This document shows positions 30,858 through 57,700 of a stretch of 64,000 nt of DNA, piece by piece. A program made the position numbers and the translations under genes. Numbering within the stretch: the first letter of the stretch is position 1; every line of letters starts with the position of its first letter. Under the pieces are notes generated by a model. It saw nothing but the letters and a program-made list of their open reading frames with translations, ran no database searches and was not told the DNA's origin. Location: contig NIVC01002371.1 of the NCBI GenBank assembly GCA_002269645.1, forward strand, positions 1-64,000, written 5' to 3'. The DNA comes from Macrostomum lignano (lineage: Eukaryota).

Positions 30858-33800
30858 ATGGACAAGCAAATAACCATGCGATTGGTACTAAAGCATCTAT
30901 CGATGCTTTTAATTGCGTTGGCTATTAGCAAGCCAAACGTTGCGGCTGAGGAAACCCTGACTGTGTTCTGGTACACCGACGTCATCGACTTGGTTCCTGG
31001 AAAAAAAGGAGACGCTAGGTTCGACCCAGAGATCGGCCGTTTTACGGTGTCGTCGACAAGGATACGGCCAAAGAGAGGGAGGACGCCATCGATACTATGA
31101 ACAATTTTCGCGCAAATGCTGATCCTCCAGCTGGCGACATGGGATATCTGGTAAGCCTTGCTTTGGGCCCTGGCTGCTCCAAATTCACAACCTGATGATG
31201 CCAGTCCTGTCTGTCTCTTTATCAGTCAGCCACCGATGCTACCCCCACCCCATTCCTGCCCGTCTCTTATCAGTCAGCCACCGATGCCTACCACCACCCC
31301 ATTCCTGCCCGTCTCTTATCAGTCAGCCACCGATGCCTACCCCCACCCCATTCCTGCCCGTCTCTTATCAGTCAGCCACCGATGCCTACCCCCTCCCAAT
31401 TCCTGCCCGTCTCTTATCAGTCAGCCACCGATGCTTACCCCCTCCCCATTCCTGTCTGTCTCTTATCAGTCAGCCACCGATTCTCATTCAGCTCTCTAGA
31501 AAGTGCAATATTTTAGCTTGGTAAAGCTCAATAGGATCTAATAATAGCAGTCGCTTATCGCTATCTACCTCGGCAGACCTGGGACGAAACTGTCGACGCA
31601 CATTGGCAATCGCAGCGCTGCGACTCCTCCTTGCAAACCAGATTGTCAACATTTGTGGCTTCAAAAACAAAGATAACTTATTCGGAGGCCATTTCGATCA
31701 TAGCAAAGGAAGGCAAAGCAGCTTTGGCTGCGGGGAAATGCAAACCCAACGAATTCTATCGGCCGTGCATGTTCTATCGGAACATGATGCAGAACGTTTC
31801 TATGACATTTGCCTGCGCCAGGTCTACTTGCGAAGGTGCCAATAAGCCTTACAGAATTTATTGCGATTTTCGCGGAAAGTAAGAAGCTGGTGCAAATTGT
31901 TTTTTTTAGTTCTAATTTGTTGAATTGTTTCGGTTGTTACAGGGACTGAAGTGTTAGCAAGGTGTCAATACATGTAAGGTGTCAGTAAGCCAAGAGACAG
32001 ACAGGAATGGGGTGGGGTTAGCATCGGTGGCTAAATGATAAGAGGCAGCTAGACAGGAATGGGGTGGGGTTAGCATCGGTGGCTAAATGACAAGAGACAG
32101 ACAGGAATGGGGTGGGGTTAGCATCGGTGGCTAAATGACAAGAGACAGACAGGAATGGGGTGGGGTTAGCATCGGTGGCTAAATGACAAGAGACAGACAG
32201 GAATGGGGTGGGGTTAGCATCGGTGGCTAAATGACAAGAGACAGACAGGAATGGGGTGGGGTTAGCATCGGTGGCTAAATGATAAGAGACAGACAGGAAT
32301 GGGGTGGGGTTAGCATCGGTGGCTAAATGATAAGAGACAGACAGGAATGGGGTGGGGTTAGCATCGGTGGCTAAATGATAAGAGACAGACAGGAATTGGG
32401 TGGGGTTAGCATCGGTGGCTAAATGATAAGAGACAGACAGGAATGGGGTTGGGTTAGCATCGGTGGCTAAATGATAAGAGACAGACAGGAATGGGGTGGG
32501 GTTAGCATCGGTGGCTAAATGATAAGAGACAGACAGAAATGGGGTGGGGTTAGCATCGGTGGCTAAATGATAAGAGACAGACAGGAATGGGGTGGGGTTA
32601 GCATCGGTGGCTAAATGATAAGAGACAGACAGGAATGGGGTTGGGTTAGCATCGGTGGCTAAATGATAAGAGACAGACAGGAATGGGGTGGGGTTAGCAT
32701 CGGTGGGCAGGGCAACTCAGCGGTTACCCTATGTCGGACGAATGCTTTGGGCCAGGATGTTTGGAATAGGCGTCAATAAGGTATCTATTCGGCGTGCACA
32801 ACCTGGCTTCAATAGTTTTGTCACATCCACATTCACAGGGACGACATGATGCCCAAAGTATTTACCGGTATGTTGTACCAAGAGTCCACTCCGTGCCAGC
32901 TGTGCCCTAAAGAGCGCGGTTATTGTTACAAAAAGTTGTGCGTCAGCGGATCTGAGAAGGCCGAAATAATCCGCGATAATCCATCAGCCGTTGTCAGTAA
33001 GTTTTCATAATATCCACTTTTCATTTTTTGTTGTCTACTGCCGCTTAAAAATATAGAACATATTAATTTAACTTTACGTAAATGATTTTTTCTTAAGCTT
33101 GCGACGCTCCGTGCATGAACTGCGGTGAAAGAAAGGATGTGGACAATGTGTGCTCCTGCCACTGCACGAAAGGCTTTACAGGGCTCGATTGCTCAGGTAA
33201 ATTTTTATTTCGATACTGAGATAAACAGGTAGATAATGTAGTAGATAATGAGGTAGACGATAAATTAGATAGTTTGGTAGACAATAAAGGGCGTACATAA
33301 TAGGATAATTAATTGCATAGATAATTCGGTAGATAGTTAGTTATATAATGAGGTAGATGATGGGATAGATAATGGGGTAGACAATGGGGTAGATAATGGG
33401 TAGATAATGGGGTAGATAATGGGTAGATAATGGGTAGATAATGGGGTAGATAATGAGGTAGATAATGGGGTAGATAATGGTTAGATAATGGGGTAGATAA
33501 TGGGTAGATAATGGGTAGATAATGGGGTAGATAATGAGGTAGATAATGGGGTAGATAATGGGTAGATAATGGGGTAGATAATGGGTAGATAATGGGGTAG
33601 ATAATGGGTAGATAATGGGGTAGATAATGAGGTAGATATTGACATAATAGTTGGATAGACGATGGCATAGTTAATAAATAAGATCAGGTGTTCATCAGTT
33701 GTTTGTCTCCCTCAAAATGAAGGAGGCAGCGGCACCGTGTCGCCAACCTGCGGCGCTTGTCGCAGAAAAGGCACACCCTGCCTGAACGGCGGCCGAGACG

Positions 33801-35635
33801 CCGGGCCGCCAACGGAGCCGTGCAAATGCCTGTGCCACACCGGCTTCTTTGGCGAGCGATGTGAAATACCCGAAGTGTTGATTAGCGGCGGCCTTAAGGT
33901 GCCAGTCGCCCCTGAAGGGGACAACGCCATCCCTGGCAGCGATGTAAGCAGCCTGCCCGACTGCATACTGCCGATTATGTACCCCGAGTATCTACCGAAC
34001 TACATGTATCTACCTACTAGCTACCCTACTGTCTACCCTACTATCTACCCTATCACCCACCCTATTATCTACCCTACCGTCTACCCTACTATCTACCCTA
34101 TTATCTACCCTACTATCTACCCTATTATCTACCCTACTATCTACCTTGTTGCTCACCATATTATCTACCCTATTATCTACCAAGCTATCTACCCTATTAT
34201 CTACCCTTAATATTTTCCCTTTTAGCCACCTTACTATTATCTACCGAACTATCTACCCTATTATCTACTCAACTATTTATCATATCATCGACCCTATTAT
34301 AAATCTTACTTACTATCTACTAAACCATCTAACCTACTATACGCATCCTACTCTCTACCATATTATCTACCCGACTATCTACTCTAATATCTGCAGTTGG
34401 TATATTTAACCCACAAACCCACAACCTACAATCGAACAAATCTTAATACCCAATTTTATAGTCTAATTTTTAGCAACATCTGCCCTCTCTCCAGCTCCCC
34501 AAGATAACTAATGAACTTAAAAACAAAGTCGCCGACGACGTAAACAAATTTTGCAAGAGGAACCAAGAAAATTACATCAAATGCTGCGGCTCCGGTACGC
34601 TGCCAACCTCCGGCCCGATGGACTTCCTAGATTCTTCTAAAGTGCACGTGCTGAAGCCAGTCAAGAGAGACAGCGGCGGCAAAATTATCACCACAGTGTA
34701 CACAGCTGTGCCAGGCAACAATGGGCTGTGCAGGAAAAACAGTAAGTGCTTAAAGTGCATTTCTAATGTACATAGTTGCGTTTTCTTCTTGAGACAGACA
34801 GGGAGAGACAAACAGGGAGAGACAGACAGGGAGAGACAGACAGGGAGAGACAGACAGGAAGAGACAGACAGGGAGATGCAGACAGGGAGATGCAGACAGG
34901 GAGAGAGAGACAGGGAGAGAGAGACAGGGAGAGACAGACAGGGAGAGACAAACAGGGAGATGCAGACAGGAAGAGACAGACAGGGAGATGCAGACAGGGA
35001 GATGCAGACAGGGAGAGAGAGACAGGGAGAGAGAGACAGGGAGAGACAGACAGGGAGAGACAAACAGGGAGATGCAGACAGGGAGATGCAGACAGGGAGA
35101 GACAGACAGGGAGAGACAGACAGGGAGAGACAGACAGGGAGAGACAGACAGGGAGAGACAGACAGGGAGAAACAGACAGGGAGATGCAGACAGTGAGATG
35201 CAGACAAGGAGAGACAGACAGGGAGAGACAGACAGGGAGAGACAGACAGAGAGATGCAGACAGGGAGATGCAGACGAGGAGATGCAGACAGGGAGATGCA
35301 GACAGGGAGAGACAGACAGGGAGAGACAGACAGGGAGAGACAGACAGGGAGAGACACAAGTTAATGAAGATCTTGCCTGAAACTGACGCATCGCGAATCG
35401 CCACCCTGTTACCATGGCAGCGGCCAAGCCCACCCCAATCGTACCTGTGCCGCCCGAGGTAGTGAAGACCGCCATAACAGACAATCTGGCCAACAAGAAG
35501 CTGGACTGCTGCGAAGCCAAAGTGGATGAGCCGATAACGAATGCCAGGGACAGTGACTTGGAGAGCTATGCCAAAGCAAAGGTGAACTGCATCAAGGTGA
35601 AGACGGGCCTAACTGCGACCATCCACAAAGTCTGA
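30858..35635 (+). CDS. Secreted CAP (SCP/TAPS, venom-allergen-like) protein with hinge, two EGF-like domains and an unrecognised Cys-containing C-terminal region; 7 exons, about 510 aa; one frame discontinuity in exon 1
   Basis: Exons: 30858-31150, 31577-31878, 32839-32996, 33098-33196, 33723-33943, 34495-34741, 35421-35635. Signal peptide MRLVLKHLSMLLIALAISKPNVAA. CAP motifs MNNFRANADPPAGDMGYLTWDETV and FACARSTC...YCDFRG. Hinge PCQLCP...CYKKLC. EGF CSCHCTKGFTGLDC and CKCLCHTGFFGERC. Confidence 0.8.
31205..31480 (+). repeat. 49 bp minisatellite in CAP intron 1 (inverted partner of 31995-32706)
   Basis: Unit ttatcagtcagccaccgatgcctaccaccaccccattcctgcccgtctc, about 5.5 copies. Confidence 0.95.
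31995..32706 (-). repeat. 48 bp minisatellite in CAP intron 2 (inverted partner of 31205-31480)
   Basis: Unit gagacagacaggaatggggtggggttagcatcggtggctaaatgataa, about 14-15 copies. Confidence 0.96.
33220..33660 (+). repeat. 11-12 bp minisatellite (gtagataatggg) in CAP intron 4
   Basis: Direct inspection. Confidence 0.93.
33990..34390 (-). repeat. 12 bp minisatellite (ctaccctattat) in CAP intron 5; reverse complement of the intron-4 array
   Basis: Direct inspection. Confidence 0.92.
34790..35357. repeat. 14 bp (gacagggagagaca / gagatgca) array in CAP intron 6
   Basis: Direct inspection. Confidence 0.94.
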
Positions 35636-36939
35636 GATCGAGTTGATTCGGCGGCTGACATTGACATGAACATTATTAATTTTTCCTAATAACAGCTAAA
35701 CCTATTTGTACTCAGATGCGGCTAATATTATACCCGTATAATCCAATTGAATCATAATTCATAAAATTGCGTAACTGCACACCTGCCCACTATATTGTAA
35801 TGTGATGCATGCCCAACTCTTTCTCTAGAAATTTACGCACAAGCACACTTAGGGACTTTGAATTTGCAGATGAACGAAATTTCGAATTGGCGCTGATCTT
35901 CAATTTGCTTTTGTTCAAATGCACCCGCAGGCCCTGCCCAAACCCAGATAAACGAAACCATTTATTTTAAATCTCTAATACTTGAATACAATAGTTCAAG
36001 AGAATATAATAATAGAATTTGCTATTATTGACCATAGGTGCATTTTCAGTGGACCCAATTCTCTACTTAGCTAATATTAACAATATACCGCAAATTAATT
36101 AATTAATTAATGCAAAAGCGTCGTCAAAATACACGCAATGGTGTTGACTTGCATAGTTATTTGTCTAGTTACTGTTAATATTTTAAAGTTATAATTATAA
36201 CAACACTCGATGACAAAATATTTTTCATTAATCTCCTTTTCTTTATACATTTACGGAAAAAAGCAAAAAGTACTATAAAAATAATACAAAAATCATAATA
36301 AATTGCGTCCCCGGGTTCGAATCCGCTCCAAGGACGACTTAAGTAGAAGGACGGGAAACCTCGTTTCTTAGAAAGGTTTTGAAGGCACTTTTTCCCGAAA
36401 AAATACACTACGGAGATAGGAAGTTTTCATTTTTTCAGCACAAAAATTATTATTGCGTTTGATAGGAGGCAGATCCAGTGTTCATCTTTTGATATGTTGT
36501 GCCTTTTTTATTGCTCTATCGATATTGATAAAGCTTTTCGTTCAGAAAATCAGGATTCTATGTTAATTTTGGGGTGGGTTGGTTCTATCAAGCCTTCCTT
36601 TCCTAGATTCTGTGGGACAAACCCGCAATAAATGGCAAAGAATTGGTAAAGTGCCCTTCAGCCTACTTAGTTTTTCTTCAGAACAAGAGTAGCTAGTATA
36701 GAATGTGATTCTTGTGCAAGAAATTTTCTCAAAATGCGGGATTTGCCATTCTGTGTATATTCTGTGGTTTACATAAGTCTACTTGATTTCCAACTCTAAC
36801 ATGTCAGTTGGTTATGCAATTTCTAGTGTCAAAATACAGCCTGATCTGCATGAAGAACTGGTCAAGGCCAGGGGCTGGAGTGATACCTGCGGGCAACTGA
36901 AAATAAGCGGAATAGTTAGTCAACAAGACTAAAATAAAA

Positions 36940-38894
36940 AATAGAATAAACTACACTAAAATAAACTTAACTAGACTAAAATAAACTAGCCTAAAACGAA
37001 CTTGTCTAAATCAAACTAAGTTAACTAAACTAAACTAAACTAAACTAAACTAAACTAAACTAAACTAAACTAAACTAAAAAAATTAGTCTAACTCAAACT
37101 AAGTTAACTAAACTAAACTAAACTAAACTAAACTAAACTAAACTAAAAACAAACTAGTCTAAATAAACCAAGTTAACTAAACTACACTAAACTAAACTAA
37201 ACTAAACTAAACTAAACTAAACTAAAAACAAACTAGTCTAAATAAACCAAGTTAACTAAACTACACTAAACTAAACTAAACTAAACTAAACTAAACTAAA
37301 CTAAAAAAATTAGTCTAACTCAAACTAAGTTAACTAAACTAAACTTAACTAAACTAAACTAAACTAAAACAAAATAGCCTAAATCAAAATAAGTTAACTA
37401 AACTAACTAAACTAAACTAAACTAAACTAAACTAAACTAAACTAAACTAAAAAATTAGTCTAACTCAAACTAAGTTAACTAAACTAAACTAAACTAAACT
37501 AAACTAAACTAAACTAAACTAAACTAAAAAAATTAGTCTAACTCAAACTAAGTTAACTAAACTAAACTAAACTAAACTAAACTAAACTAAACTAAAAACA
37601 AACTAGTCTAAATAAACCAAGTTAACTAAACTACACTAAACTAAACTAAACTAAACTAAACTAAACTAAACTAAAAACAAACTAGTCTAAATAAACCAAG
37701 TTAACTAAACTACACTAAACTAAACTAAACTAAACTAAACTAAACTAAACTAAAAAAATTAGTCTAACTCAAACTAAGTTAACTAAACTAAACTTAACTA
37801 AACTAAACTAAACTAAAACAAAATAGCCTAAATCAAAATAAGTTAACTAAACTAACTAAACTAAACTAAACTAAACTAAACTAAACTAAACTAAACTAAA
37901 AAATTAGTCTAACTCAAACTAAGTTAACTAAACTAAACTAAACTAAACTAAACTAAACTAAACTAAACTAAACTAAACTAAACTAAACTAAACTAAACTA
38001 AAAACAAACTAGTCTAAATAAACCAAGTTAACTAAACTACACTAAACTAAACTAAACTAAACTAAACTAAACTAAACTAAAAAAATTAGTCTAACTCAAA
38101 CTAAGTTAACTAAACTAAACTTAACTAAACTAAACTAAACTAAAACAAAATAGCCTAAATCAAAATAAGTTAACTAAACTAACTAAACTAAACTAAACTA
38201 AACTAAACTAAACTAAACTAAACTAAAAAATTAGTCTAACTCAAACTAAGTTAACTAAACTAAACTAAACTAAACTAAACTAAACTAAACTAAACTAAAC
38301 TAAAAAAATTAGTCTAACTCAAACTAAGTTAACTAAACTAAACTAAACTAAACTAAACTAAACTAAACTAAAAACAAACTAGTCTAAATAAACCAAGTTA
38401 ACTAAACTACACTAAACTAAACTAAACTAAACTAAACTAAACTAAACTAAAAAAATTAGTCTAACTCAAACTAAGTTAACTAAACTAAACTTAACTAAAC
38501 TAAACTAAACTAAAACAAAATAGCCTAAATCAAAATAAGTTAACTAAACTAACTAAACTAAACTAAACTAAACTAAACTAAACTAAACTAAACTAAAAAA
38601 TTAGTCTAACTCAAACTAAGTTAACTAAACTAAACTAAACTAAACTAAACTAAACTAAAACAAACTAGCCTAAATCAAAATAAGTTAACTAAACTTAACT
38701 AAACTAAACTAAAATAAACTAGTCTAAATCAAACTTAGGTAACTGAACTAAACTAAACTAAACTAAACTAAACTAAACTAAACTAAAACAAACTAGCCTA
38801 AATCAAACTAAGTTAACTAAACTAAGCTAAACTAAACTAAACTAAAACAAACTAGCCTAAATCAAACTAAGTTAACTAAACTAAACTAAACTAA

Positions 38895-39809: not shown

Positions 39810-41000
39810 AGTTTGAGAGGAAAGGAAAGGAGAAGAAGGGAGAGGAAAGGAGAGAGAGAGAGAAGAGGAGAGGAGAGAGAGGAGAGGAGAGGAGAGGAGA
39901 GGAGAGGAGAGGAGAGGAGAGGAGAGGAGAGGAGGGGAGAGAAGGGGAGAGGAGAGGGGACAGAAGAAGGGAGAGGAGGGGAGAGGAGAAGAGAGGAGGG
40001 GGAGGAAGGGAGAGGAGGGGAGAGGAGGGGAGAGGAGGGGAGAGGAGGGGAGAGGAGAAGAGAGGAGGGGGGAGGAAGGGAGAGGAGGGGAGAGGAGGGG
40101 AGAGGAGGGGAGAGGAGGGGAGAGGAGGGGAGAGGAGGGGAGTGGAAGGGAGAGGAGAAGAGAGAGGAGGGGAGGAGGGGAGAGGAGGGGAGAGGAGGGG
40201 AGAGAAGAGAGAGGAGGGGAGGAGGGGAGAGGAGGGGAGAGGAGGGGAGAGGAGGGAGAGAAGAGAGAGGAGGGGAGAGGAGAAGAGAGAAGAGGGGAGA
40301 GGAGGGGAGAGGAGGGGAGAGGAGAAGAAAGAGGAGGGGAGGAGGGGAGAGGAGGGGAGAGAAGGGGGAAAGGAGGGGAGTGGAAGGGAGAGGAGAGGAG
40401 AGAGGAGGGGAGAAGGGAGAGGAGAAGAGAGAGGAGGGGAGGAGGGGAGAGGAGGGGAGAGGAGGGGAGAGAAGAGAGAGGAGGGGAGGAGGGGAGAGGA
40501 GGGAGAGGAGGGGAGAGGAGGGAGAGAAGAGAGAGGAGGGGAGAGGAGAAGAGAGAGGAGGGGAGAGGAGGGGAGAGGAGGGGAGAGGAGAAGAGAGAGG
40601 AGGGGAGGAGGGGAGAGGAGGGGAGAGGAGGGGAGAGGAGAAGAGAGAGGAGGGGAGAGGAGAAGAGAGAGGAGGGGAGAGGAGAAGAGAGAGGAGGGGA
40701 GGAGGGGAGAGGAGGGGAGTGGAAGGGAGAGGAGAAGAGAGAGGAGGGGAGGAGGGAGAGGAGGGGAGAGGAGGGGAGAGGAGAGAGGAGGGGAGGAGGG
40801 GAGGAGGGGAGAGGAGGGGAGAGGAGGGGAGAGAAGAGAGAGGAGGGGAGGAGGGAGAGAGAGAGGAGGGGAGAGGAGGGGAGAGGAGGGGAGAGGAGAA
40901 GAGAGAGGAGGGGAGGGAGGGGAGAGGAGGGGAGAGGAGGGGAGAGGAGAAGAGAGAGGAGGGGAGAGGAGAAGAGAGAGGAGGGGAGAGAAGAGGGGAC
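39810..41000. repeat. GA-rich array (gaggagggga)
   Basis: Direct inspection. Confidence 0.95.
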
Positions 41001-41711
41001 AGGTCCAGGGGAGGAGACTCACAGAGAAGCAGAGAGAGAGATTGGATTGCAAAGCCAGCACACAGCAACAGTGGAAATTGCTCAGAACACATGCAATATA
41101 GCGTTCCACCCTCAGGCTGGCAGGCTAATAAGTTATACAGTTGAGAAATACTCTCAGCCAAGCAGAGATATGCTTGTAAGGCAGTATGCAGATTCCAGCG
41201 CAATTATTAATTATTAGTCCTCCGATAAGCCGGAGATTGCCACTATCAGCCTTCATCTTAGCTTTGCCAAGGGATTTGATGTGTTTTTTACATTACCTTA
41301 CTTATTCAGAAAAGGAAAAACACACCTTGGCAACAAAGACAATCTGCTTGCATGGTAAGTAGCCAAAAAGCAAACAGATTCATTGTTTGCCAACGCAATG
41401 CATACATGCACAATCATTTTTAGCTGCCTTTGTTTCCACTCGTGTCGAAGCTACAAGCAGTTTCCAGCGAGAGACAGCTGACCAAAAGTCCCACCCGGTT
41501 CCAAACTCACACGGATTTTCCATACTCCATCAGCTGACAAATTGTCTGGCAAAAATTGGTTTCCGCGTTAGCAACAACACCTCTCGGAGAAATATTTGAC
41601 GGGTTGTTAGGAAAAGAAAATGGATTGAAGTTTACGGGGCATTCATCATTAGTGTGCTTGGTTGCGTTTCACATCATCTCCCTCTCCACTCTTGGCACTC
41701 ACTTCAGCCCC

Positions 41712-42430
41712 TATTCCCCTCTCTGTTCCCCTCTCTGCTCCCCTTTCTGTTCCCCTCTCTGCTCCCCTCCCTGTTCCCCTCTCTGTTCCCCTCTCTGTTC
41801 CCTTCTCTGTTCCCCTCTCTGCTCCCCTCTCTGTTCCCTTCTCTGTTCCCCTTTCTGTTCCCCTCTCTGTTCCCCTCTCTGTTCCCTTCTCTGTTCCCTT
41901 CTCTGTTCCCCTCTCTGTTCCCCTCTCTGCTTCCCTCTCTGTTCCCCTCTCTGTTCCCTTCTCTGTTCCCCTCTCTGTTCCCTTCTCTGTTCCCCTCTCT
42001 GTTCCCCTCTCTGTTCCCCTCTCTGTTCCCCTCTCTGCTTCCCTCTCTGTTCCCCTCTCTGTTCCCTTCTCTGTTCCCCTCTCTGTTCCCTTCTCTGTTC
42101 CCCTCTCTGCTTCCCTCTCTGTTCCCCTCTCTGTTCCCTTCTCTGTTCCCCTCTCTGTTCCCCTCTCTGTTCCCTCTCTGCTTCCCTCTCTGTTCCCCTC
42201 TCTGCTCCCCTCTCTGCTCCCCTCTCTGTTCCCCTCTCTGTTCCCCTCTCTGTTCCCCTCTCTGCTCCACTCTTTGTTCCCCTCTCTGCTCCACTCTTTG
42301 TTCCCCTCTTTGTTCTTCTCTCTGTTCCCCTCTCTGTTCCCCTCTCTGTTCCCCTCTCTGTTCCCCTCTCTGCTCCACTCTTTGTTCCCCTCTTTGTTCT
42401 TCTCTCTGTTTCCCTCTCTGCTCCCCTCCA
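41712..42430. repeat. 12 bp pyrimidine-rich array (ctctctgttccc)
   Basis: Direct inspection. Confidence 0.95.
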
Positions 42431-42839
42431 CTTCTCCTTCTTCATTTCTATTTCATTCCGTTCCCCATACCTATGGCTTCTTTAAACCCATCTAAATACG
42501 TGTACTGGGAAACCGTTCCACCCTCTGATTAAGTATGATTGTGTTTGAGTGTAAAAAATGATTTATTAATGAAGAGTAGCTGGACTGATCTGGTACAGAA
42601 TTGAAGCTATCGCTATAAAGAGATTAAGACGGCGTTAGAAATGACTAAAAAGAATAATTAATTAGCTAACTGCTAACAGCTGAATTTTCCCTTGTTCAAA
42701 ACTAGTTTCTTTAATTTCTTACTGTTAGTTTTTTCTACTTACTCGTAGAAAGGATTAAACTTAATAAGTACTTATGTTAGAAAAATTCAATTTCAAATCT
42801 ATTTGTTATAACTCTGTATTGAAACTTTGATCTGAACGT

Positions 42840-43851: not shown

Positions 43852-46607
<2,756 letters not shown>

Positions 46608-48105: not shown

Positions 48106-50597
48106 CAGATATCTTTTTTTAAAATATAACCGTAAAAAGTTAATGGTTTCACTATATATAGCTTTTTTAAAATCCAGTTTCTCAGTCTGAAATTTGTGTT
48201 GACTATAGCCCAACTTATCCTTATTAAATCTACAGGATTAAAAGTTTTCCTGTCCTTTTTTCTAACAGCACGTGTCAAATAACGGCTGAGCAACAGGTAA
48301 AAAACGGAATTTTTCACAATTCGTTGATAGTACCGTCGACCATTTTGAGTCTCTTTCGCAATTAAGAGCAATAAGAATAGTATCTCTCGGGTTAGGAAAT
48401 AACTGAGGGAAACTATAAAAAATCAATCACTATCTATATTTTCCTACTTTCGCAGTTCGGTGAGCGCCTACAGTAGAATCAAATTCTAGATATATCGCAT
48501 TGCCAGGCCTTTATATCTCTGACTGGACGAGTATCCGATAAGTGTGCCGCGAGGGCCGCTCTGGGGTCAGTTTAGGTCAGGGGAGGGGGGAGAAAATCCC
48601 CACGAAGACTCAGACCCGCTCAGCAGGCTGTGTATTCGAGGATTAGCGACTGTGTTTTAGACGAGTTGGTTCTCAGTGCTGGGATAATAATAAATGAAAA
48701 AAGGAAATTTATCCTCTCTCTATCGGCTCCCCCTGTTTTCGTTCCCCATCTGTTTTCGCACCCTCAGCTGACTGAGTCTTAGAAATTCGAACTTGGCATA
48801 GGGATAGGGGCGATAATCCTCTACGGGAACTGCTCACCCGCCAGCTTGCATGGATTTTCCCGCATCAAATTTCTGAGCAACAAAATACCTGTATGAATGG
48901 GCTGCCGAATACAAAACATGAACTTGGGGAACTATTGTTCAATAATACAAGAAAAATTTCAATCAGGGACATTATATAATTACAGCTATGGACAGAGTGG
49001 CAGGCGGAGCGGGGGAGCGAGAGGGAGAGGAAGTTGATAATGAAAATGAAGAGTGTTTGCATGCCGGAATTTTGCCCATCGACATACACCCGCCGTACCT
49101 CACCGACACTTGCCCACCGACGTTGACCCACCGACATTTACCCTCCGACATTTAACCACCGACATTTACTTATCGACATTTACTCACCGACATTCACCCA
49201 CCGACACTTACCCTCCGACATTCACCCTCCGACATTTACCTATCGACATTTACCGACCGACATTCACCCACCGACACTTACCCTCCGACATTCACCCTCC
49301 GACATTTACCCTCCGACATTTACCCACCGACATTTACCCACCGACATTTACCCACCGACATTTACCCACCGACATTTACCCACCGACATTTACCCACCGA
49401 CATTTACCCACCGACATTTACCCAACGACATTTACCCGCTGACATTTATCCACCGACATTTACCCACCGACATTTACCCACCGACATTTACCCACCGACA
49501 TTTACCCACCGAAATTTACCCACCGACACTTACCTATCGACATTTGCCCAACGAAATTCGCCCGCCGACTTTTGCCTGCCACACAATTTTCTTAGCCTAT
49601 ATTTTTTACTTTCTTGTTTAACACGAGAGAATATTTGGCGTTATGAACTCTCTAAAATGTGTCACATGTATTTAATTTGGAATTGTGGCTAACTACTTGC
49701 AGTAGCTGAAAATAAATATGTATTTCTGTTTATGCTAAGGAGAATGAAATCTGTTTTATAGCAGGCAACTTTGAATGCTAATTTTCCCGTAACTATAAGT
49801 AACGTGGTCAGCAATTTTTAAGTAAACAGTTTTGTCTTGTTGAAGCTTCTTTGAAGTAAAGAAATGCGTCTACTAAGTTTGCCTGCCGGACGTTTGCCAG
49901 CCGACGTTTGCCTGCCGGACATTTGCAGGCGGCAATTGGTTAAAGAAGTACGCCCTCTCTAGGCTTACATGTATTTGCATTTGAAAGCTGTGGACACAGC
50001 ACTTATCTAATTTCACCTCGCTCCCTACTACTGCTATTAAATATGCAGGTTACTAACAAACTACTATTCAGGCTTATTGAAGTTATTGCTCTTGTCTGCC
50101 TAAATAGAAAGGTAAAAATACAAAATAGGATTTTCCATTGTCACGGTTGATATCTATGTATGCCATGGAATGGCCCTTTCCATCTCAGTGGCCAAACAAG
50201 CTAAATGGGAAAAGACTGAGACATCCATAATGGTAGATTAAGTCTATGGTTTCAGACTTGGATAATGATCACAGTCACGAGTGGCGAAGCCACGAGTGAC
50301 TGCTGATCATTATTTAATTCTGAAACCATAGACATAATCGCATTATCATATAAACTAGCGTTTTCGGTTGATCATTATGTAACGCCATTAAGCCACGCCA
50401 TTAAGTAACGCTGCAGTGTCTTCGTGCCATAGATATTGGCTCGGCAGTGAGCAGGGACAAGGGGGCGCAGCTCCCTTGCGGGTGTGGGGGCAGAGCCCCC
50501 ACTAATTGGACCATAGACAATTTTTTAGAATACAGTTCTCTAAAAGAAAAGCTCGACCATGAAATCTGTTAGGAAGTTAAGAACTAGAAGCAAGAAC

Positions 50598-50605
50598 TAT
50601 AAATA
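50598..50605 (+). promoter_or_regulatory. TATA box candidate for the knottin gene
   Basis: TATAAATA about 100 nt upstream of the ATG at 50705. Confidence 0.5.
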
Positions 50606-50704
50606 GTTTGGTATTTATACTGAAACAATTCTCTGCATACACAACCCTAGCTACACTAGATTTTGCGATCTAAAGCAACAAGCAAGCAGACCTACTTCTT
50701 TGCG

Positions 50705-51006
50705 ATGAAGTACTTCATAATGCTGTTAGCCATTGTCATGTTCTTCGGTAAGCTCAGTTAGAAAGCTTAGATAGATGTGTTTTTAATTCAAAAAAAAATA
50801 TTGCGCACATGTTTCTCATATACTACTCACCCGTCAAAGCAGGTCTCGGATCGCGCGCCTGTCCGCCCAAGTTCTGCACAAAGACCGGCCGTCTCTGCCA
50901 GTCCGACAATGACTGTTGTTCGAAAAAATGCAACCCGATACTATCGAAGATGGGCAACTGCGCACCTGGTGGTAACCCGCCTGGTACTCAAGAGTACTAT
51001 GATTAA
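50705..51006 (+). CDS. Secreted inhibitor-cystine-knot (conotoxin-like) peptide, 68-aa precursor, 2 exons
   Basis: Exons 50705-50747 and 50843-51006, phase-1 GTAAG...GCAG intron. Sequence MKYFIMLLAIVMFFGLGSRA-CPPKFCTKTGRLCQSDNDCCSKKCNPILSKMGNCAPGGNPPGTQEYYD; cysteine spacing C-x6-C-x5-CC-x3-C-x9-C. Confidence 0.88.
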
Positions 51007-51477
51007 CAAACTATCAATATACCGACTTAAGAATTTATCATATTTCGTAAAATGTTGCACGATTGATGCAAGGTACTTTTGTGTCGCAAGTTTTTGTATT
51101 GTCAAATTGTTGCAAACTATTAAAATGTTAGTTGACTAAATTGAAACTTAATGATCTTCAATTTCCTTTTTTCTTAGCAAGCCTGAGTTTATACACGGCA
51201 CACGTAACAGTAAAGATGACAATTAACCTGCAGCTGTAGCTAGCAGTAATAAAAATCGTATCAAGCTATGAGCGTGCAAAGTACATACACTGTAGCTGAT
51301 GAATATTTCCGCTAGATTTTAAAACCACTTGAAAGACTTATACAGCAATTGTTACACCGTAAATTTGACACAAATGTTATATAGCTAGTAGCCCATCACA
51401 AAAAGACACTAATTACGAGTACTTTGTTTACTTTGTTGCCTGGCATCAGCGGATGATTGAGGTTATTGAGGTTAAAA

Positions 51478-52425
51478 GTCCCTTCCCTTATCTCCTTTCC
51501 CTTATCTCCCTTCCCTTACATGTATCTCCCTTCCCTTATCTCCTTTCCCTTATCTCCCTTCCCTTACATGTATCTCCCTTCCCTTATCTCCCTTCCCTTA
51601 TCTCCCTTCCCTTATCTCCCTTCCCTTACATGTATCTCCCTTCCCTTATCTCCCTTCCCTTATCTCCCTTCCCTCATCTCCCTTCCCTTATCTCCCTTCC
51701 CTCATCTCCCTTGCCTTATCTCCTTTCCCTTATCTCCCTTCCCTTACATGCATCTCCCTTCCCTTATCTCCCTTCCCTTATCTCCCTTCCCTCATCTCCC
51801 TTCCCTTATCTCCCTTCCCTTGTCTCCCTTCCCTTATCTCCCTTCCCTTATCTCCCTTCCCTCATCTCCCTTCCCTTATCTCCCTTCCCTTGTCTCCCTT
51901 CCCTTATCTCCCTTCCCTTATCTCCCTTCCCTTGTCTCCCTTCCCTTATCTCCCTTCCCTTATCTCCCTTCCCTCATCTCCCTTCCCTCATCTCCCTTCC
52001 CTTATCTCCCTTCCCTTATCTCCCTTCCCTATTTCCCTTCCCTTGTCTCCCTTCCCTTATCTCCCTTCCCTTATCTCCCTTCCCTTGTCTCCCTTCCCTT
52101 ATCTCCCTTCCCTTATCTCCCTTCCCTTGTCTCCCTTCCCTATTTCCCTTCCCTTGTCTCCCTTCCCTTATCTCCCTTCCCTTATCTCCTTTCCCTTATC
52201 TCCTTTCCCTTATCTACCTTACCTTACATGTATCTCCCTTCCCTTATCTCGCTTCCCTTATCTCCCTTCCCTTATCTCCTTTCCCTTATCTCCTTTCCCT
52301 TATCTACCTTACCTTACATGTATCTCCCTTCCCGTATCTCCCTTCCCTTATCTCCCTTCCCTTATCTCCTTTCCCTTATCTCCTTTCCCTCATCTCACTT
52401 CCCTTATCTCCCTTCCCTCATCTCA
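51478..52425. repeat. 14 bp pyrimidine array (ccttatctcccttc)
   Basis: Direct inspection. Confidence 0.95.
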
Positions 52426-54751
52426 GCAAAAAAATCAGCAAAAATCAGAATCAGTAAAAAAACTGGGGAAAACACTAGTTTAATGCTTCTGGTGTATGCC
52501 AAGCGAGTCTGTCAGTAACTCGCTTTCCAAAACTGCTGTCCGAATATTCATTTCCCTTTACAGGAATTAGGGGCACAGGGCGCACCTACTTTGAGAATGA
52601 GAGAAGAACCGCGAAACACTTTTTATGATTTTTCTTGACAACTTATGGTTTGCTATCTGAGCCAGTCTGAGCAGCCTTGGCTTTTGACACTTGACACGAC
52701 TGACAGTTTGCAGTTTGCTGTCGATTTGCCTTTTGTTTATGGGTAAAGTTGCTCTATATATGAAGATTTTTACAAAAAAATCAATCTACAAGTCGGAACC
52801 AAAATAATCATGTCTTTATCGATTGCATGCAGTTATGTAAATAATAAACGCCGTTTAATTCACATTCTGTGGTTAGAATGTCTGAGGCTGCGTTTAATGG
52901 TATTGGCCTAGTCTCGCCTATATATGCTTAACTCAAAAGCCAAACTCTGCTTAACGGAGTTTGGCCATGACAGCGTGCACTTGACAAGCTGCATTGGAAT
53001 TAATTCGCTTACTTTTGGATCTCCCAATGAACTGGGAAATATATAAGCCAGAATCATGGTTCAGCAGGTCTTTTGTTTGCTCAAAACTTGGCTCGCTGGA
53101 GATTCCCTTTTTAAATTTGCGTTGCCTTCATTCGCAAATCAAAAATGAAACATCTCAAACTGGGAAAAGCGATGCAAAACTGTCAGAAGTAAACTTTATA
53201 ATATTTTCACATTCAAAGAAATTGTTGTTAAACTGGATGCTAGATTGATGAACTGAATTATTTGCATAGATTTTGCTTTCGGAACTTTTATACATGCGAA
53301 TAATCGTTAAAAAGTTAGACTAAAAAACCGTTTTTTTTCAAACGGCTAAACTGAAAATATTTCAGTATCAAATTCAGTATCACTGACAATGTCGGCTGGC
53401 AAACATCGGCTGGCAAACGTCCCGCAGGCAAACGTCCCGCAGGCAAACGTCGGCTGGCAACGTCGGCTGGCAAACGTCGGCTGGCAAACGTCGGCTGGCA
53501 AACGTCGGCTGGCAAACGTCCCACAGGCAAACGTCGGCAGGCAAACGTCCCGCAGGCAAACGTCGGCTGGCAAACGTCGGCTGGCAAACGTCCCACAGGC
53601 AAACGTCGGCAGGCAAACGTCCCGCAGGCAAACGTCGGCTGGCAAACGTCGGCTGGCAAACGTCAGCTGGCAAACTTCCCACAGGCAAACGTCCCAAAAA
53701 ATGGAGTCTACATAAGAAAGCTCAAATACAGAATCATGGAGTCCGTCTATAAGAGCAAAGGACAGTATTCTCGCATAGGACAGTAAATTACATGTACGTC
53801 GTAAGTGAAAACTCTTTAGGCTAAGCTAAAATTGATCTATGAATTGCGGTGGGCAAATGTCGGAGGGTAAATGTCGGTGAGTAAATGTCGGTGAGTAAAT
53901 GTCGGTGAGTAAATGTCGAAGGTGAGTGTCGGTGAGTAAATGTGGGTTGCTAAATGTCGGTAGGTAAATGTCGTTGGGTAAATGTCGTTGTGTAAATGTC
54001 GTTGAGTAAATATTGGTTGGTAAATGTCGTTTGGTAAATGTGTTGGGTAAATGTCGTTGAGTAAATGTCGGTGGGTAAATTTCGTTGTGTAAATGCCGGA
54101 GGGTAAATGTCGGAGGGTAAATGTCGGAGGGTAAATGTCGGAGGGTAAATGTCGGAGGGTAAATGTCGGAGGGTAAATGTCGGAGGGTAAATGTCGGATT
54201 GTAAATGTCAGATGGTAAATGTCGGTTGGTAAATTTCGGTGGTAAATGTCGGTGGTAAATGTCAGTGAGTACATGTTGTTGGTTACATGTCGGTGGGTAA
54301 ATGACGGTTAGAAAATTTCGTTGGGTAAATGTCGTTAGGTAAGAGTCGGTGGGAAAATGTCGGCGGGCGAAGGGAGATTCAAGCACAATATACATAAATC
54401 TGTCTAACGAGTAAACGTTATAGTGCGAATATTACACAAGTAACCAAAATTGGCATAATTTAATACACCAATGGACTTCGTTGCATGCAGATGACTCACG
54501 CTAGCTTCATTAGTTTAATTCCATTCAGTATATACGAGCGTAGTTACACCTGACGAGTGTAATTCATACAGCGCCAATTCCAACTTGCGAAAAGTTAACT
54601 AACTAATTGTATCGAATGTCATTTTCGGTCTAACAAGAGCTAGAAAAACATTAATTGTTATTAATTGCAAGATTTAGACTGCCGTGGCTCATGCTACACT
54701 TGTATAAAAATACCGGCTTAGTTGTGTCGGATTCTGTGGGTTTCTGAAAAC

Positions 54752-57700
54752 ATGAACAGCGACTGCCCTCCTGGCTGGCAGCCGGGCGCTGCGGTCACCG
54801 TTATTGGTGAGTGAAGCTGCTGGTCTGTTGCACACCTGCGACTTTCTTAGAATTTAGCACAGCTTGAGATAAGGGAGATCATCGATTGGTATTGCTTCTT
54901 AACACTCTCAGTCTATTTCTCCCTCTTCCCCTCTACCTCTCTCCCATCTACCTCTCTCCCATCTACCTCTCTCTCCCATCTACCTCTTTCTCCCATCTAT
55001 CTCTCTCCCATCTATCTCTCTCCCATCTACCTCTCTCCCATCTACCTCTCTATCCCATCTACCTCTCTCCCCTCTGCCTCTCTCCCATCTACCTCTCTCT
55101 CCCATCTATCTCTCCCCCATCTATCTCTCTCCCATCTACCTCTCTCCCATCTACCTCTCTCCCATCTACCTCTCTCCCATCTACCTCTCTCCCATCTACC
55201 TCTCTCCCATCTACCTCTCTCCCATCTATCTCTCTCCCATCTACCTCTCTCCCATCTACCTCTCTCCCATCTACCTCTCTCCCATCTAACTTTCTCCCAT
55301 CTATCTCTCTCTCCCATCTAACTCTCTCTAACCCTCTACCCCTCTCCCATCTACCTCTCTCACTCCATCTACATCTACCCCCACCTCCTCTCTCCCCTCT
55401 AACTCTCTCCTCTCTACCTACGTCCCTCTCAACCTCTCTCCGTCTCTATCTCCCTATTCCCTTTACCTTCCTTTCCCTCTCTCTAGCTCAATACTCTCCT
55501 TCAAGGAACCTACCTCTCGATCAACACATCCAACGAAGCCTATAGTTGTAAATTCTATTTGCCAATTGAACTGCAAAAAATACACCCGGTATTATCAATA
55601 GTAGTTTCCATGACAATCATTCCATTCATATTTACAGTTTTTCGAGCAGTGGGACTTCGCGTTCCGACGTTGCCATTCAGTAATAAGACCCCTGATTTTC
55701 TGAATTTTGTTTTAGATAATATTTAGTGAGACGCAGCAGTGTATTAAAAAGTTTCTAAAATGATTTTAGATTTTAACAAAACCGCCAGATGGCGCGTTAT
55801 GATCAGTCTCGGTCGGGAGAAACGAGTCTCACCTGTAGACGTGGAGGCCGTCAATGGCAACCCAGTGTGGGACACTGCCGCTACTTTGTAAGCTCTCTTA
55901 TCTCTGTGTTTCTGTCTTATCTATGTGTTTATCTCTCTTATCTCTGTGTTTATCTCTCTTATCTCTGTGTTTATCTCTCTTATCTCTGTATTTCTGTCTT
56001 ATCTATGTGTTTATCTCTCTTATCTCTGTGTTTATCTCTCTTATCTCTGTATTTATCTCTCTTATCTCTGTGTTTATCTCCCTTACCTCTGTGTGTTTAT
56101 CTCTCTTATCTATGTGTTTATCTCTCTTATCTATGTGTTTATCTCTCTTATCTATGTGTTTATCTCTCTTATCTATGTGTTTATCTCTCTTATCTATGTG
56201 TTTATCTCTCTTATCTATGTGTTTATCTCTCTTATCTATGTGTTTATCTCTCTTATCTATGTGTTTATCTCTCTTATCTATGTGTTTATCTCTCTTATCT
56301 ATGTGTTTATCTCTCTTATCTATGTGTTTATCTCTCTTATCTATGTGTTTATCTCTCTTATCTATGTGTTTATCTCTCTTATCTATGTGTTTATCTCTCT
56401 TATCTATGTGTTTATCTCTCTTATCTATGTGTTTATCTCTCTTATCTATGTGTTTATCTCTCTTATCTATGATTATCTCTCTTATCTGTGTGTTTATCTC
56501 TAGCCTATATGAGTCTAATCTGTTTGACTCTGCATTTTTTTGCAATGAGGACTGTCTGGCAGTCATCTCTGTACGCATCCGTGTGCCTGTTCGGGGCCGT
56601 GGGCGAGAGGTAGGGAGGTAGGGGAGAGAGTAGGATCAGAGGTAGAGTGGGGAGGTAGATGATAGAGAGGTAGATGGGAGAGAGGTTGAGGGCGGAGAGA
56701 GGTAGATAGGAGAGAGATACAGAGGGGACAGAGGAGGAGGGGGGAAATGGTAGAGTGGGACAGAGAGGTAGAGGAGGGGGAGGAGGAGAGAGGTAGATGG
56801 GAGAGAGGTAGATCGGAGAGAGGTAGATGGGAGAGAGAGGTAGATGGGAGAGAGAGGTAGATGCGAGAGGTAGAGGGGAGAGAAATACAGAGGGGACAGA
56901 GGAGGAGGAGAGAGGTAGAGGGGGAGGAAGAGGAGGAGAGGTAGATGGGAGAGAGAAAGAGAGGGGGAGAGAGGTAGATGGGAGAGAGTGGTAGATAGGA
57001 GAGTGTGGTAGATAGGAGAGAGAGGTAGATGGAGAGAGAGATGTAAAGGGAGGAGAGGTAGATGGGAGAGAGAGGTAGATAAGAGGGAGACGTAAAGGGG
57101 GGAGAGGTAGATGGGAGAGAGAGGTAGATGGGAGAGAGATGTAAAGGGGGGAGAGATAGATGGGAGAGAGTGGTAGATAGGAGAGATTAGTAGATCGGGG
57201 AGAGAGGTAGATGGGAGAGAGAGGTAGATGGGAGAGAGAGGTAGATAGGAGAGATTGGTAGATAGGAGAGAGAGGTAGATGGGAGAGAGAGGTAGATAGG
57301 AGAGAGATGTAAAGGGGGGAGAGGTAGATGGGAGAGAGAGGGAGAGGGAGAGAGAGGTAGATGGGAGAGGGATGTAAAGGGGGAGAGGTAGATGGGAGAG
57401 AGAGGTAAAGGGCGAGAGGTAGATGGGAGAGAGAGGGAGAGGGAGAGAGAGGTAGATGGGAGAGAGATGTAAAGGGGGAGAGGTAGATGGGAGAGAGAGG
57501 TAAAGGGCGAGAGGTAGATGGGAGAGAGAGGTAGAGGGTCAGCTGTCGCTTTTTGATTTGCGACATCGCCAAAGCCCGCGAACGGGAGTTCCAGCAAGCA
57601 CTGCACCCCCCACTCCGCTCTGCTAAACACTGAAGCAACCTGCCAACAAAACACCGCGACGTCAGCGAACCGGACGACCGTCTTCGCATCCGCATTCTGT

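Follow-up and report, generated by a model that had tools for sequence, protein, structure and literature searches.

In other animals, it is well established that circular RNA formation can be driven by repeats that are complementary between the introns flanking an exon. In the inverted Alu-type cases, the repeats are dispersed and common to thousands of introns, with many competing pairings. Drosophila hairpin-RNA (endogenous siRNA) loci are dedicated non-coding genes that transcribe long inverted repeats; the arms, in some loci tandemly repeated, derive from target genes. Transposons such as Foldback, Galileo and Tetris carry long inverted arms that are repetitive within, differ in length and expand independently of each other (PMC3573991, PMC4079207). 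Such foldback-type elements form dispersed families with shared termini, 7–9 bp target-site duplications and element-derived loops.

The window analyzed here is a 64,000-nucleotide stretch of Macrostomum lignano DNA (contig NIVC01002371.1:1-64000). Tandem Repeats Finder places 43% of it in tandem arrays (n = 39, nearly all with private units) and recovers, in position, every array named in an initial annotation of this DNA. Five array pairs are found at four loci, one of which is nested; each unit is common only to the two partners, always as the reverse complement, and the partner arms lie 0.3–4.3 kb apart (Table 1). In a CAP-EGF gene, P1 brackets exon 2 and P2 exon 5; a whole two-exon knottin gene lies within the nested P3, and P4 brackets exons of a C2-domain gene. 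For P1, P2, P3 outer, P3 inner and P4, respectively, the left-arm consensus matches the reverse complement of the right at 43/49, 10/12, 14/14, 13/15 and 15/17 positions, versus 21/50, 4/12, 6/15, 9/15 and 4/17 in direct orientation. The initial annotation had described paired arrays in opposite orientation with coding sequence between them, and inverted identities from 10/12 to 14/14 bear this out. Probes of two units, allowing as many as 3 mismatches, were compared with the 64 kb and with an unrelated 26.5-kb M. lignano locus; they match the + strand in the left arm only and the − strand in the right arm only, with no other match in either sequence. The units are absent elsewhere in the window, as had been claimed. 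Sharing of 10-mers and self-BLAST agree with this picture of inverted, private partner arms, and the same two methods reveal no complex units arranged as a separated direct pair in the 64-kb window. The left 30 kb had been described as lacking a convincing pair, which holds for complex units but not for (GTCT)n/(ACAG)n microsatellites, present in both orientations at 321-836, 5994-6263 and 17020-17587.

Table 1. Positions of paired arrays and of the sequences that they enclose, in window coordinates.
Feature	Positions	Strand	Description	Basis
P1 left arm	31201..31484	+	49-mer x5.7, C-rich orientation, CAP intron 1	Tandem Repeats Finder
CAP exon 2	31577..31878	+	302 nt, within P1 loop 31485-31991	gene model; matches PAA70790 and related models
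P1 right arm	31992..32706	-	48-mer x14.8, CAP intron 2	reverse complement of left unit, 43/49
P2 left arm	33219..33638	+	12-mer TAGATAATGGGG, CAP intron 4; core 33318-33638, 12-mer x27.5; outer portion degenerate	Tandem Repeats Finder
CAP exon 5	33723..33943	+	221 nt, second EGF-like module, within P2 loop 33639-33967	acceptor site set from annotated models
P2 right arm	33968..34392	-	degenerate 12-mer TATCTACCCTAC x31, CAP intron 5; begins 24 bp past exon 5 donor site	10/12 inverted identity
Candidate sixth pair, low complexity	39815..42443		GA-rich 39815-41041 and CT-rich 41711-42443	inverted BLAST
P3 outer left arm	49095..49583	+	14-mer TACCCACCGACATT x34	Tandem Repeats Finder
Unique DNA adjoining outer left array	49584..49680	+	inverted-homologous to 53745-53839	local alignment
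P3 inner left arm	49875..49932	+	15-mer GTTTGCCTGCCGGAC, about 4 units	Tandem Repeats Finder (x3.4)
Knottin-like secreted peptide gene	50705..51006	+	exons 50705-50749, 50842-51006	sequence reading
P3 inner right arm	53388..53695	-	14-mer GTCGGCTGGCAAAC x20	inverted copy of inner left unit, 13/15
P3 outer right arm	53840..54372	-	14-mer CGGTGGGTAAATGT x37.5	consensus is exact reverse complement of outer left unit
P4 left arm	54912..55500	+	15-mer TCTACCTCTCTCCCA x32.5	first intron of C2-domain gene
C2-domain gene exons in P4 loop	55638..55887	+		sequence reading; tblastn of A0A1I8H9W7 against window
P4 right arm	56600..57539	-	17-mer GAGGTAGATGGGAGAGA x54; stops ~95 bp short of next exon (~57636-58254)	inverted copy of left unit, 15/17

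The arms of each pair share a common descent, and their relatedness is far beyond chance. The orientation bias by itself is only suggestive: all 4 independent loci are inverted (binomial p ~0.06; counting 5/5 pairs gives 0.03). The sample is small, with ~90 kb and ~53 arrays in all, and includes the unrelated 26.5-kb locus, which has multiple introns and 14 arrays and no inverted pair. The bracketing of exons is partly a by-product of genome layout: arrays occupy 67–84% of five of the six CAP introns, and because they fill most of the introns, the DNA between two arrays is usually an exon. The low-complexity candidate sixth pair has inverted BLAST matches of 108 bits in the window and 167–176 bits in gene copy g3, with units 9/12 identical when inverted; no recognizable exon lies between 39815-41041 and 41711-42443, and this pair is indistinguishable from compositional convergence.

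The CAP gene model splices cleanly on the + strand with GT-AG introns and is 97% identical to the annotated M. lignano protein PAA70790. Both bracketed CAP exons are normal, lying in frame on the gene's own strand, and are retained in all five annotated CAP protein models. In the P1 left arm, the units at the edges still have TGTCTG, as the right arm does, whereas those in the center have changed to TGCCCG; TGCCTG is seen in the other two gene copies. Fixed differences separate the partner consensus units at 6/49 positions in P1 and 2/12 in P2. An inversion with one breakpoint inside a single ancestral array could also produce two opposite half-arrays around an inverted segment. In its favor, the last letters of the P1 left arm are ...CCACCGAT, and CCACCGATGC comes first when the right arm is read inward from its outer end, so that the two halves are nearly contiguous in unit phase, although a phase coincidence this large has a prior chance of ~1/3. 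Such an event would flip the segment between the arms, whereas CAP exons 2 and 5, like the C2-gene exon, are in frame on the gene's strand. Array fission by inversion is contradicted by this exon orientation and also by both P3 inner array edges, which run into homologous unique DNA, and we consider it very improbable.

Local alignment detects no inverted homology in the unique flanks of P1, P2 and P4. At the knottin locus, inverted homology continues from the inner edges of both outer arrays at the same unit phase: 49584-49680 aligns with 53745-53839 (z = 3.4, equalled by 2 of 300 shuffles), starting at the array edge on both sides and reaching ~90 nt in the gapped alignment. In turn, the inner left and outer units are related, agreeing at 10/14 positions in the same orientation. 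Homologous unique DNA at the inner array edges argues for duplication rather than fission, and P3 appears to be a block of DNA duplicated in inverted orientation, the related inner array pair included. The enclosed knottin-like gene lies entirely inside both P3 pairs, has a six-cysteine framework and a TATA-like motif ~100 bp upstream of its start codon, and shows a weak match to Pfam Toxin_18 (E = 5e-5, below the curated cut-off). It corresponds to the N-terminus of UniProt model A0A1I8H9W7, a chimeric model in which the P3 inner right arm appears as an 'exon'. By tblastn, the same model backs a C2-gene exon at ~55789-55887, and 55638-55679 is probably another; this C2-domain gene was called 'FIP' in the initial annotation.

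The composite P3 arms (outer array, unique DNA and related inner array), with inverted homology that enters unique DNA, resemble the architecture of Foldback, Galileo and Tetris. The pairs might thus be foldback-type non-autonomous DNA transposons, or locally hopping array-bearing elements, with long terminal inverted repeats of tandem units; the exons or gene would then sit in the 'loop', or two single-armed copies would occupy neighboring introns. Against this, no target-site duplication beyond chance is present at any of the five outer boundaries, different pairs have no terminal sequence in common, the units are private in the 64 kb plus 26.5 kb, and no transposase-like reading frame occurs in or near the P3 loop. 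Moreover, the host exons inside the P1, P2 and P4 loops are on the correct strand and in phase with the flanking exons, so an element cannot have inserted there as a unit, and the model would call for two local insertions, oppositely oriented, in every one of four distinct families. The foldback origin offered as an alternative in the initial annotation therefore matches in architecture but not in target-site duplications, shared termini or transposase, and we regard it as unlikely, if still worth weighing.

Three contigs that were assembled separately (NIVC01001206.1, NIVC01002371.1 and NIVC01000702.1) all contain P1 and P2, in the same order and orientation. These gene copies are 93–98% identical in unique DNA, and the two pairs are older than their divergence. 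Across the three copies, the P1 left arm has 3.7, 5.7 and 8.8 units and the right arm 26.8, 14.8 and 10.8; the P2 left arm has 17.5, 27.5 and 37.8 and the right arm 15.4, 31.4 and 17. Copy number differs 2–3-fold between arms and among copies, and the length of a left arm does not track that of its right partner across the three. Each arm behaves as its own minisatellite, evolving independently of its partner. The M. lignano genome is highly repetitive and was assembled from early PacBio data (PMC5730564), which could raise the suspicion of palindromic long-read chimeras or mis-joined repeats, and the gene-copy comparison covers two of the pairs, P1 and P2. Recurrence of P1 and P2 in three contigs with different copy numbers speaks against such an artefact. 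A chimeric read would also mirror everything at near identity, whereas in most pairs the two consensus units diverge, by as much as 17%, and each loop is single-copy. In addition, the older ML2 assembly yielded a protein model that runs through the knottin, the inner right array and the C2 gene with unchanged order and orientation, at 99–100% identity. We therefore find an assembly artefact scarcely credible.

Cognate arms would be expected to pair strongly and specifically in RNA. Predicted duplex energies run from −98 to −418 kcal/mol for partners versus −3 to −214 for non-partners, and the predicted fold of 33293-34392 encloses CAP exon 5 in a loop (−498 kcal/mol). The arms might form a selected device that pairs in the primary transcript and loops out an exon or gene, with circular RNA from back-splicing, regulated exon skipping, or double-stranded RNA feeding small-RNA or editing pathways as output. 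Flanking-intron complementary repeats have the first of these effects in other animals, and each intron concerned has just one arm of its pair, so that arms could pair across the exon without competition within the intron. Both arms of P1 and P2 are kept in the three diverged gene copies, although neutrality alone would predict retention across 2–7% divergence. Polycistronic precursors make up about 7% of M. lignano transcripts (PMC5730564), so even the arms flanking the knottin gene could share one transcript. Conversely, the bracketed exons are present in all annotated models, skipping of CAP exon 2 (302 nt) or exon 5 (221 nt) would shift the frame, and P3 surrounds a whole gene, with the TATA-like motif before its start codon, rather than an exon. 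The low-complexity candidate pair has no visible exon between its arms, arm lengths vary 2–3-fold without co-variation between partners, and the unrelated locus with its 14 arrays lacks any pair. The exon-specific RNA staples suggested in the initial annotation are not supported by these data, and we think a selected device of this kind improbable. With such complementarity, long double-stranded RNA, back-splicing or exon looping must be possible; we regard this as a by-product and not as a selected function.

Our preferred reading, to which we give about an even chance, is local inverted copying of array pieces, with later independent expansion of the arms and loss of direct pairs. The setting would be DNA-level turnover in a minisatellite-saturated genome; high turnover is supported by the 43% array content, the private units, one 14-mer array with 40 copies in the window versus 368 in another gene copy, and the published figure of 15% simple and tandem repeats in the genome (PMC5730564). 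A piece of an existing array may be copied in inverted orientation into a non-coding interval 0.3–4 kb away, by templated insertion during break repair, template switching or reinsertion of an excised array fragment; at the knottin locus, ~1 kb comprising an array, adjoining unique DNA and a second array would have been copied. Afterwards, each copy would expand, contract and homogenize alone, like an ordinary variable-number tandem repeat. Direct pairs would be short-lived, as recombination or single-strand annealing would merge the arrays or delete the exon between them, and selection would remove such deletions; we propose that this is why only inverted pairs are visible. Survivors would be insertions in introns or intergenic DNA only, and, with most introns here filled by arrays, whatever unique DNA remains between arms would usually be an exon. 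The suggestion that private minisatellites are copied in inverted orientation across an exon thus fits the data, with inverted, partner-only units and block homology at P3. No direct-orientation pair or 'empty site' that would mark the copying step or the filter was seen in the DNA compared here. Local copying also has points against it: inverted 'copy and paste' of array DNA over 0.3–4 kb has no single textbook mechanism, the sample is small with an orientation bias of p ~0.03–0.06, and the four loci cluster in 26 kb, with none in the left 30 kb or the unrelated 26.5-kb locus, a clustering that a uniform background process does not predict.

As in ordinary minisatellites, each arm consists of head-to-tail units of 12–49 bp with degenerate edges and a homogenized center, and its copy number varies between gene copies. 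Minisatellites are usually described as single arrays, whereas here inverted partner arrays flank functional DNA. Literature searches found no earlier description of recurrent inverted partner minisatellite arrays across functional DNA, and we know of none. Like Drosophila hairpin-RNA loci, the arms are predicted to form long double-stranded RNA, but they are intronic or intergenic and not exon-derived. With foldback-type transposons (Drosophila FB, Galileo of the P superfamily, Tetris), they share inverted arms of short tandem units with unequal lengths, arms with several domains, as at the knottin locus, and variable loop content (PMC3573991, PMC4079207). Unlike those elements, the unit is specific to each pair, target-site duplications are lacking and three of the four loops hold in-frame host exons. 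As with the inverted Alu pairs that circularize exons in mammals, complementary sequences sit in the introns flanking one or a few exons and the predicted pairing draws the splice sites close to each other; unlike them, one pair (P3) spans a whole gene, and the complementarity, as read from the DNA, is private to one pair, extends over hundreds of bp and offers many registers.

The inverted array pairs on this Macrostomum lignano contig are a real structural feature. Tandem Repeats Finder resolves 39 non-redundant tandem arrays that make up 43% of the 64-kb window, almost all of them with a unit of their own, and every array named in the initial annotation was recovered at its place. At four loci (P1–P4, with P3 nested as an outer and an inner pair, hence five pairs), partner arrays have consensus units that are reverse complements of each other, as had been claimed. 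Partners are identical in inverted orientation at 43/49 (P1), 10/12 (P2), 14/14 (P3 outer), 13/15 (P3 inner), and 15/17 positions (P4), and in direct orientation at 21/50, 4/12, 6/15, 9/15, and 4/17 positions, respectively. Two-unit probes, searched with up to three mismatches in the window and in L006 (an unrelated 26.5-kb M. lignano locus), match the left arm on the plus strand only and the right arm on the minus strand only; they have no further match in the window, in keeping with the claim that the units occur nowhere else there, and none in L006. On these unit comparisons, the relatedness of partner arms far exceeds chance, and orientation bias alone gives p ~0.06 for four independent loci or 0.03 if the nested pair is counted twice.

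Self-BLAST and 10-mer sharing reveal no separated direct-orientation pair of complex units in the window. Three exceptions are of another kind: a compound array, GA-rich low-complexity cross-matches, and the (GTCT)n/(ACAG)n microsatellites, the first two of which flank exons of the minus-strand phosphorylase-kinase gene that the window also carries. The (GTCT)n/(ACAG)n copies were left out of the pair count because an independent origin is possible for them. The earlier statement that the left 30 kb holds no pair is correct for complex units, of which no inverted pair was found there, and needs amending for this tetranucleotide, which is present in both orientations. L006 (NIVC01000089.1), where 14 arrays lie within or next to a gene with several introns, has neither an inverted pair nor a separated direct pair. 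Since pairs are missing from L006 and from the left 30 kb of the window, the phenomenon is not general to M. lignano introns.

Positions of the paired arrays and of other features in the window
Feature	Position	Setting
P1 arms	31201-31484; 31992-32706	CAP introns 1 and 2; bracket exon 2 (302 nt)
P2 arms	33219-33638; 33968-34392	CAP introns 4 and 5; bracket exon 5 (221 nt)
P3 outer arms	49095-49583; 53840-54372	intergenic; bracket an entire gene (two exons) that encodes a knottin-like secreted peptide with six cysteines
P3 inner arms	49875-49932; 53388-53695	intergenic; nested in the outer pair
P4 arms	54912-55500; 56600-57539	introns of the C2-domain gene; bracket at least one exon
(GTCT)n	321-836	plus strand
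(ACAG)n	5994-6263	minus strand
(TCTG)n	17020-17587	plus strand
Compound array	18282-20326	
GA-rich and CT-rich arrays	39815-41041; 41711-42443	possible sixth pair
Dispersed ~190-bp repeat	12490-12685; 23316-23542; 29343-29533	three copies, both orientations
CAP exon 1 frameshift	31020-31035	1 nt
Spacer, exon 5 donor to P2 right arm	33944-33967	24 bp
14-mer array	34790-35356	CAP intron 6
ORFs	43852-44442; 45063-46607	196 codons (upstream); 514 codons
Hairpin	50236-50339	knottin locus
Knottin gene exons	50705-50749 (signal); 50842-51006 (second)	TATA-like motif ~100 bp upstream of start codon
Model A0A1I8H9W7	50705-59042	array-derived part 53376-53783
C2-gene exons	~55789-55887; ~57636-58254	spliced to each other
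Probable C2-gene exon	55638-55679	42 nt
Splice-site-like unit, P4 right arm	56600-56610	GAG|GTAGAT

The possible sixth pair consists of a GA-rich and a CT-rich array 670 bp apart that align in inverted orientation; its scores (108 bits in the window, 167–176 bits in g3, another assembled copy of the locus) come from sequence too low in complexity for certainty, and no recognisable exon was found between the two arrays. A core motif common to the arrays was considered and rejected as unconvincing: across otherwise unrelated units of the window and L006, GGGAGA recurs in 9 (shuffles: 95th percentile 6, maximum 9) and GAGACAG in 5 (95th percentile 4) of 39 families, an excess that is only modest and compositional. 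The seeds of some arrays may have been (GACA)n or GA-rich tracts. The dispersed ~190-bp repeat, one copy of which has an inverted match in L004 (the contig of g3), probably represents a family of short interspersed or miniature elements.

The gene that carries P1 and P2, the CAP (CAP-EGF) gene, is present in three assembled copies: g1 (L001, NIVC01001206.1), g2 in the window (L005, NIVC01002371.1:21097-45635), and g3 (L004, NIVC01000702.1). The arrays of L005 coincide with those of the window at a constant offset (assembly Mlig_3_7). L001 and L004 are collinear with 21–47 kb of the window at 93–98% identity, and the copies belong, as alleles or homeologues, to the partly duplicated karyotype on record for this line (PMC5730564). 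P0128, which derives from a different assembly (GCA_041260155.1), was left out. P1 and P2 are found in all three separately assembled copies with order and orientation unchanged, and copy numbers alone differ. For g1, g2, and g3, respectively, the P1 left arm has 3.7, 5.7, and 8.8 units and the right arm 26.8, 14.8, and 10.8; the P2 left arm has 17.5, 27.5, and 37.8 and the right arm 15.4, 31.4, and 17. For P3 and P4, the one support from outside the contig is a protein model of the older ML2 assembly (99–100% identity), which runs from knottin through the inner right array to the C2 gene in the orientation of the window. An assembly artefact from a chimeric-read palindrome would have near-identical arms, mirror the entire neighbourhood, and be missing from the other assembled copies. 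This explanation was rejected: unit-level differences of up to 17% between the arms of most pairs and single-copy loops (the DNA between the arms) are unlike such a palindrome, and P1 and P2 recur in three contigs.

The gene copies differ in other respects. Copy numbers of the 14-mer array GAGACAGACAGGGA are 40 (window), 42 (g3), and 368 (g1, where the array reaches 5.1 kb; L001 14098-19260), a very large gap. Extra DNA of 2.9 kb in g1 (L001 3067-5955) and of 1 kb in g3 (L004 5430-6414) has no counterpart at ~26756 of the window, and this length difference is an insertion/deletion polymorphism between gene copies. In CAP exon 1, g1 and g3 read GDARFDPRDRPFYGVV, whereas the window changes frame past GDARFDP, so that its annotated protein PAA58472 (431 aa) begins at an internal methionine; the frameshift reflects either a pseudogene or a homopolymer assembly error. 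For the 514-codon ORF, which has the 196-codon ORF upstream of it, a protein search detected no homologue and Pfam no domain; its region has 96.7% DNA identity in g1, and the public record has no annotated gene at this place.

The spliced CAP model has seven plus-strand exons, GT-AG ends at every intron, and a continuous reading frame; along its entire length it shares 97% identity with M. lignano PAA70790 (BOX15_Mlig019681g1). Five models from annotation or UniProt agree with this structure except at the exon 5 acceptor, which they move to 33723. Pfam matches no CAP domain in PAA70790 at E <= 0.01; P0122, which is 42% identical to it, has PF00188, and the UniRef name of the protein is "SCP domain-containing." The knottin peptide has only a weak Toxin_18 match in Pfam. 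At P4, splicing of the two exons has the support of a UniProt model. UniRef names this gene model "C2 domain-containing." Of the two domains that mark a Rab11-FIP, C2 and a C-terminal Rab11-binding domain, Pfam matches none in this downstream gene; the Rab11-FIP label of the initial annotation comes from a reading of motifs and is not confirmed by Pfam. Coding DNA inside every loop shares its strand with the rest of its gene. Arrays fill 67–84% of five of the six CAP introns, which makes the bracketing of an exon nearly the default for any two neighbouring arrays.

Several features of these loci deserve mention in their own right. The public model A0A1I8H9W7 (P0127) is a chimera in which 136 residues read off the inner right arm lie between the knottin and exons of the C2-domain gene; it is probably an annotation artefact, or else reflects a read-through or polycistronic transcript. 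The hairpin in the knottin locus is near-perfect, with a stem of ~55 bp and an RNA fold of -70.4 kcal/mol (z = -14.9 relative to shuffled sequence). Either a miniature inverted-repeat element or a hairpin RNA could account for it; Rfam has no match for the hairpin and finds no known RNA family elsewhere in the window. The P2 right arm begins close to a splice site, 24 bp past the exon 5 donor, and the unit of the P4 right arm, repeated ~50 times, resembles a 5' splice site.

The anatomy of the arms bears on their origin. In P1, P2, and P4, homology is restricted to the arrays, and the unique inner and outer flanks have no inverted or direct similarity above shuffles; an inverted segmental duplication with exon remnants was rejected for want of inverted homology in these flanks. 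At P3, both outer arrays end at the same unit phase on their inner edges and are followed by homologous unique DNA (local alignment of ~30 nt, z = 3.4, equalled in 2 of 300 shuffles; gapped alignment of ~90 nt), and the inner pair has a unit 10/14 identical to the outer unit and co-oriented with it on each side. By the shared junctions and the related inner pair, P3 is an inverted duplication of a composite segment of ~1 kb and not a pair of independently arisen arrays. The orientation of the exons, like the P3 junctions, contradicts a split of one array by inversion. Six positions distinguish the left consensus unit of P1 from the right one. At both ends of the left arm, the outermost unit keeps the right-arm TGTCTG; the centre of that arm reads TGCCCG, and g1 and g3 have the intermediate TGCCTG. 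This pattern is the usual one for homogenisation of an array from its middle, with no recent conversion between arms. Each arm evolves independently, and the pairs are older than the split of the three copies.

The main rival explanation is a foldback-type transposon (FB, Galileo, Tetris), and elements of this kind had been proposed to form around host exons. The long inverted arms made of tandem repeats that all five pairs have are expected of such elements, and the composite arms of P3 with their unique segment fit them well. Of the proposal, these arms are what stands. Target-site duplications, sought as identical 7–9 bp at the outer ends (where boundaries are fuzzy and array edges degenerate), were not found: outer junctions share direct words of at most 3–6 bp (P = 0.13–0.96 against random window positions). 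No termini are common to the five pairs, ORFs in and near the P3 loop have no transposase-like reading frame and no Pfam match, and in-frame host exons occupy the loops of P1, P2, and P4. Within the window and L006, the five units have no copies beyond the pairs themselves.

Most likely, the pairs arose by inverted copying, followed by independent evolution of the arms and loss of direct copies. An array fragment, and in one case a larger composite block, would have been placed as an inverted copy in a non-coding interval nearby, and both copies would thereafter have behaved as independent minisatellites. Copies in direct orientation would vanish, as recombination between them merges the arrays or removes the intervening exon, which is the proposed reason that none are seen; inverted copies would not be lost by that route. 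Candidates for the copying step are templated insertion while a break is repaired, template switching at a stalled fork, and reinsertion of an excised array fragment.

The arms had also been read as exon-specific RNA staples. Duplex energies of cognate arms (plus-strand RNA, first 280 nt) are -411 (P1), -279 (P2), -327 (P3 outer), -98 (P3 inner), and -418 kcal/mol (P4), and the same calculation gives -3 to -214 kcal/mol for non-cognate combinations. In the predicted fold of the 1100 nt from 33293 to 34392 (-498 kcal/mol), the P2 arms are paired and exon 5 is looped. By these models, the arms would tend to pair when present in one transcript, and the pairing idea is physically sound. Reverse-complementary sequence in both flanking introns, as required for back-splicing, is present at P1, P2, and P4 and not at P3, which surrounds a whole gene; a literature search on circular RNA in Macrostomum found nothing relevant. 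The pairing part of the staple idea is consistent with predicted RNA structure; a selected function is not supported. Exons 2 and 5 are kept in all annotated models, and skipping of either would shift the frame; one pair encloses an entire gene, and the GA/CT-rich candidate pair encloses no recognisable exon. Arm lengths vary 2–3-fold between the three copies with no co-variation of partners, retention of the pairs across 2–7% divergence is explicable without selection, and pairs are absent both from L006 and from the window's left 30 kb. Pairing may nonetheless have consequences at the RNA level.

It is judged rather improbable that a recurrent, possibly selected process in M. lignano places a private, many-register minisatellite "clamp" around exons or small genes, controlling circularisation or skipping or feeding small-RNA or editing pathways. 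If it does, each arm in a primary transcript would form a duplex of hundreds of base pairs with its own partner. Such locus-addressed pairing would be an alternative to the mammalian kind, which relies on shared repeats (Alu-type). Should the pairs prove to be genome-wide, they would reveal how arrays spread locally in a minisatellite-rich animal genome and why inverted copies alone persist; in a model organism for regeneration, this would give repair and recombination a signature that can be measured. To RNA biology, they would offer natural, partner-specific intron pairings of known geometry, ideal for tests of circRNA, exon looping, and dsRNA. Since M. lignano is open to transgenesis (PMC5730564), deletion or flipping of arms is feasible. 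Even as a local curiosity, the pairs are a warning to annotators, as one UniProt model takes an array arm for a coding exon and fuses two genes.

No account of inverted minisatellite pairs was found in the literature, for Macrostomum or elsewhere, and a published description could not be found for the combination of pair-private units, many-register arms, and several adjacent pairs across functional DNA. Each component on its own has precedents, namely minisatellites, inverted arrays of the foldback kind, and intronic repeats whose complementarity promotes circRNA. As in minisatellites (VNTRs, with units of 10–100 bp), the arms consist of head-to-tail units, here of 12–49 bp, whose copy number differs between gene copies, and as in Galileo and Tetris, the arms of P3 are internally repetitive and expand independently (PMC3573991, PMC4079207).
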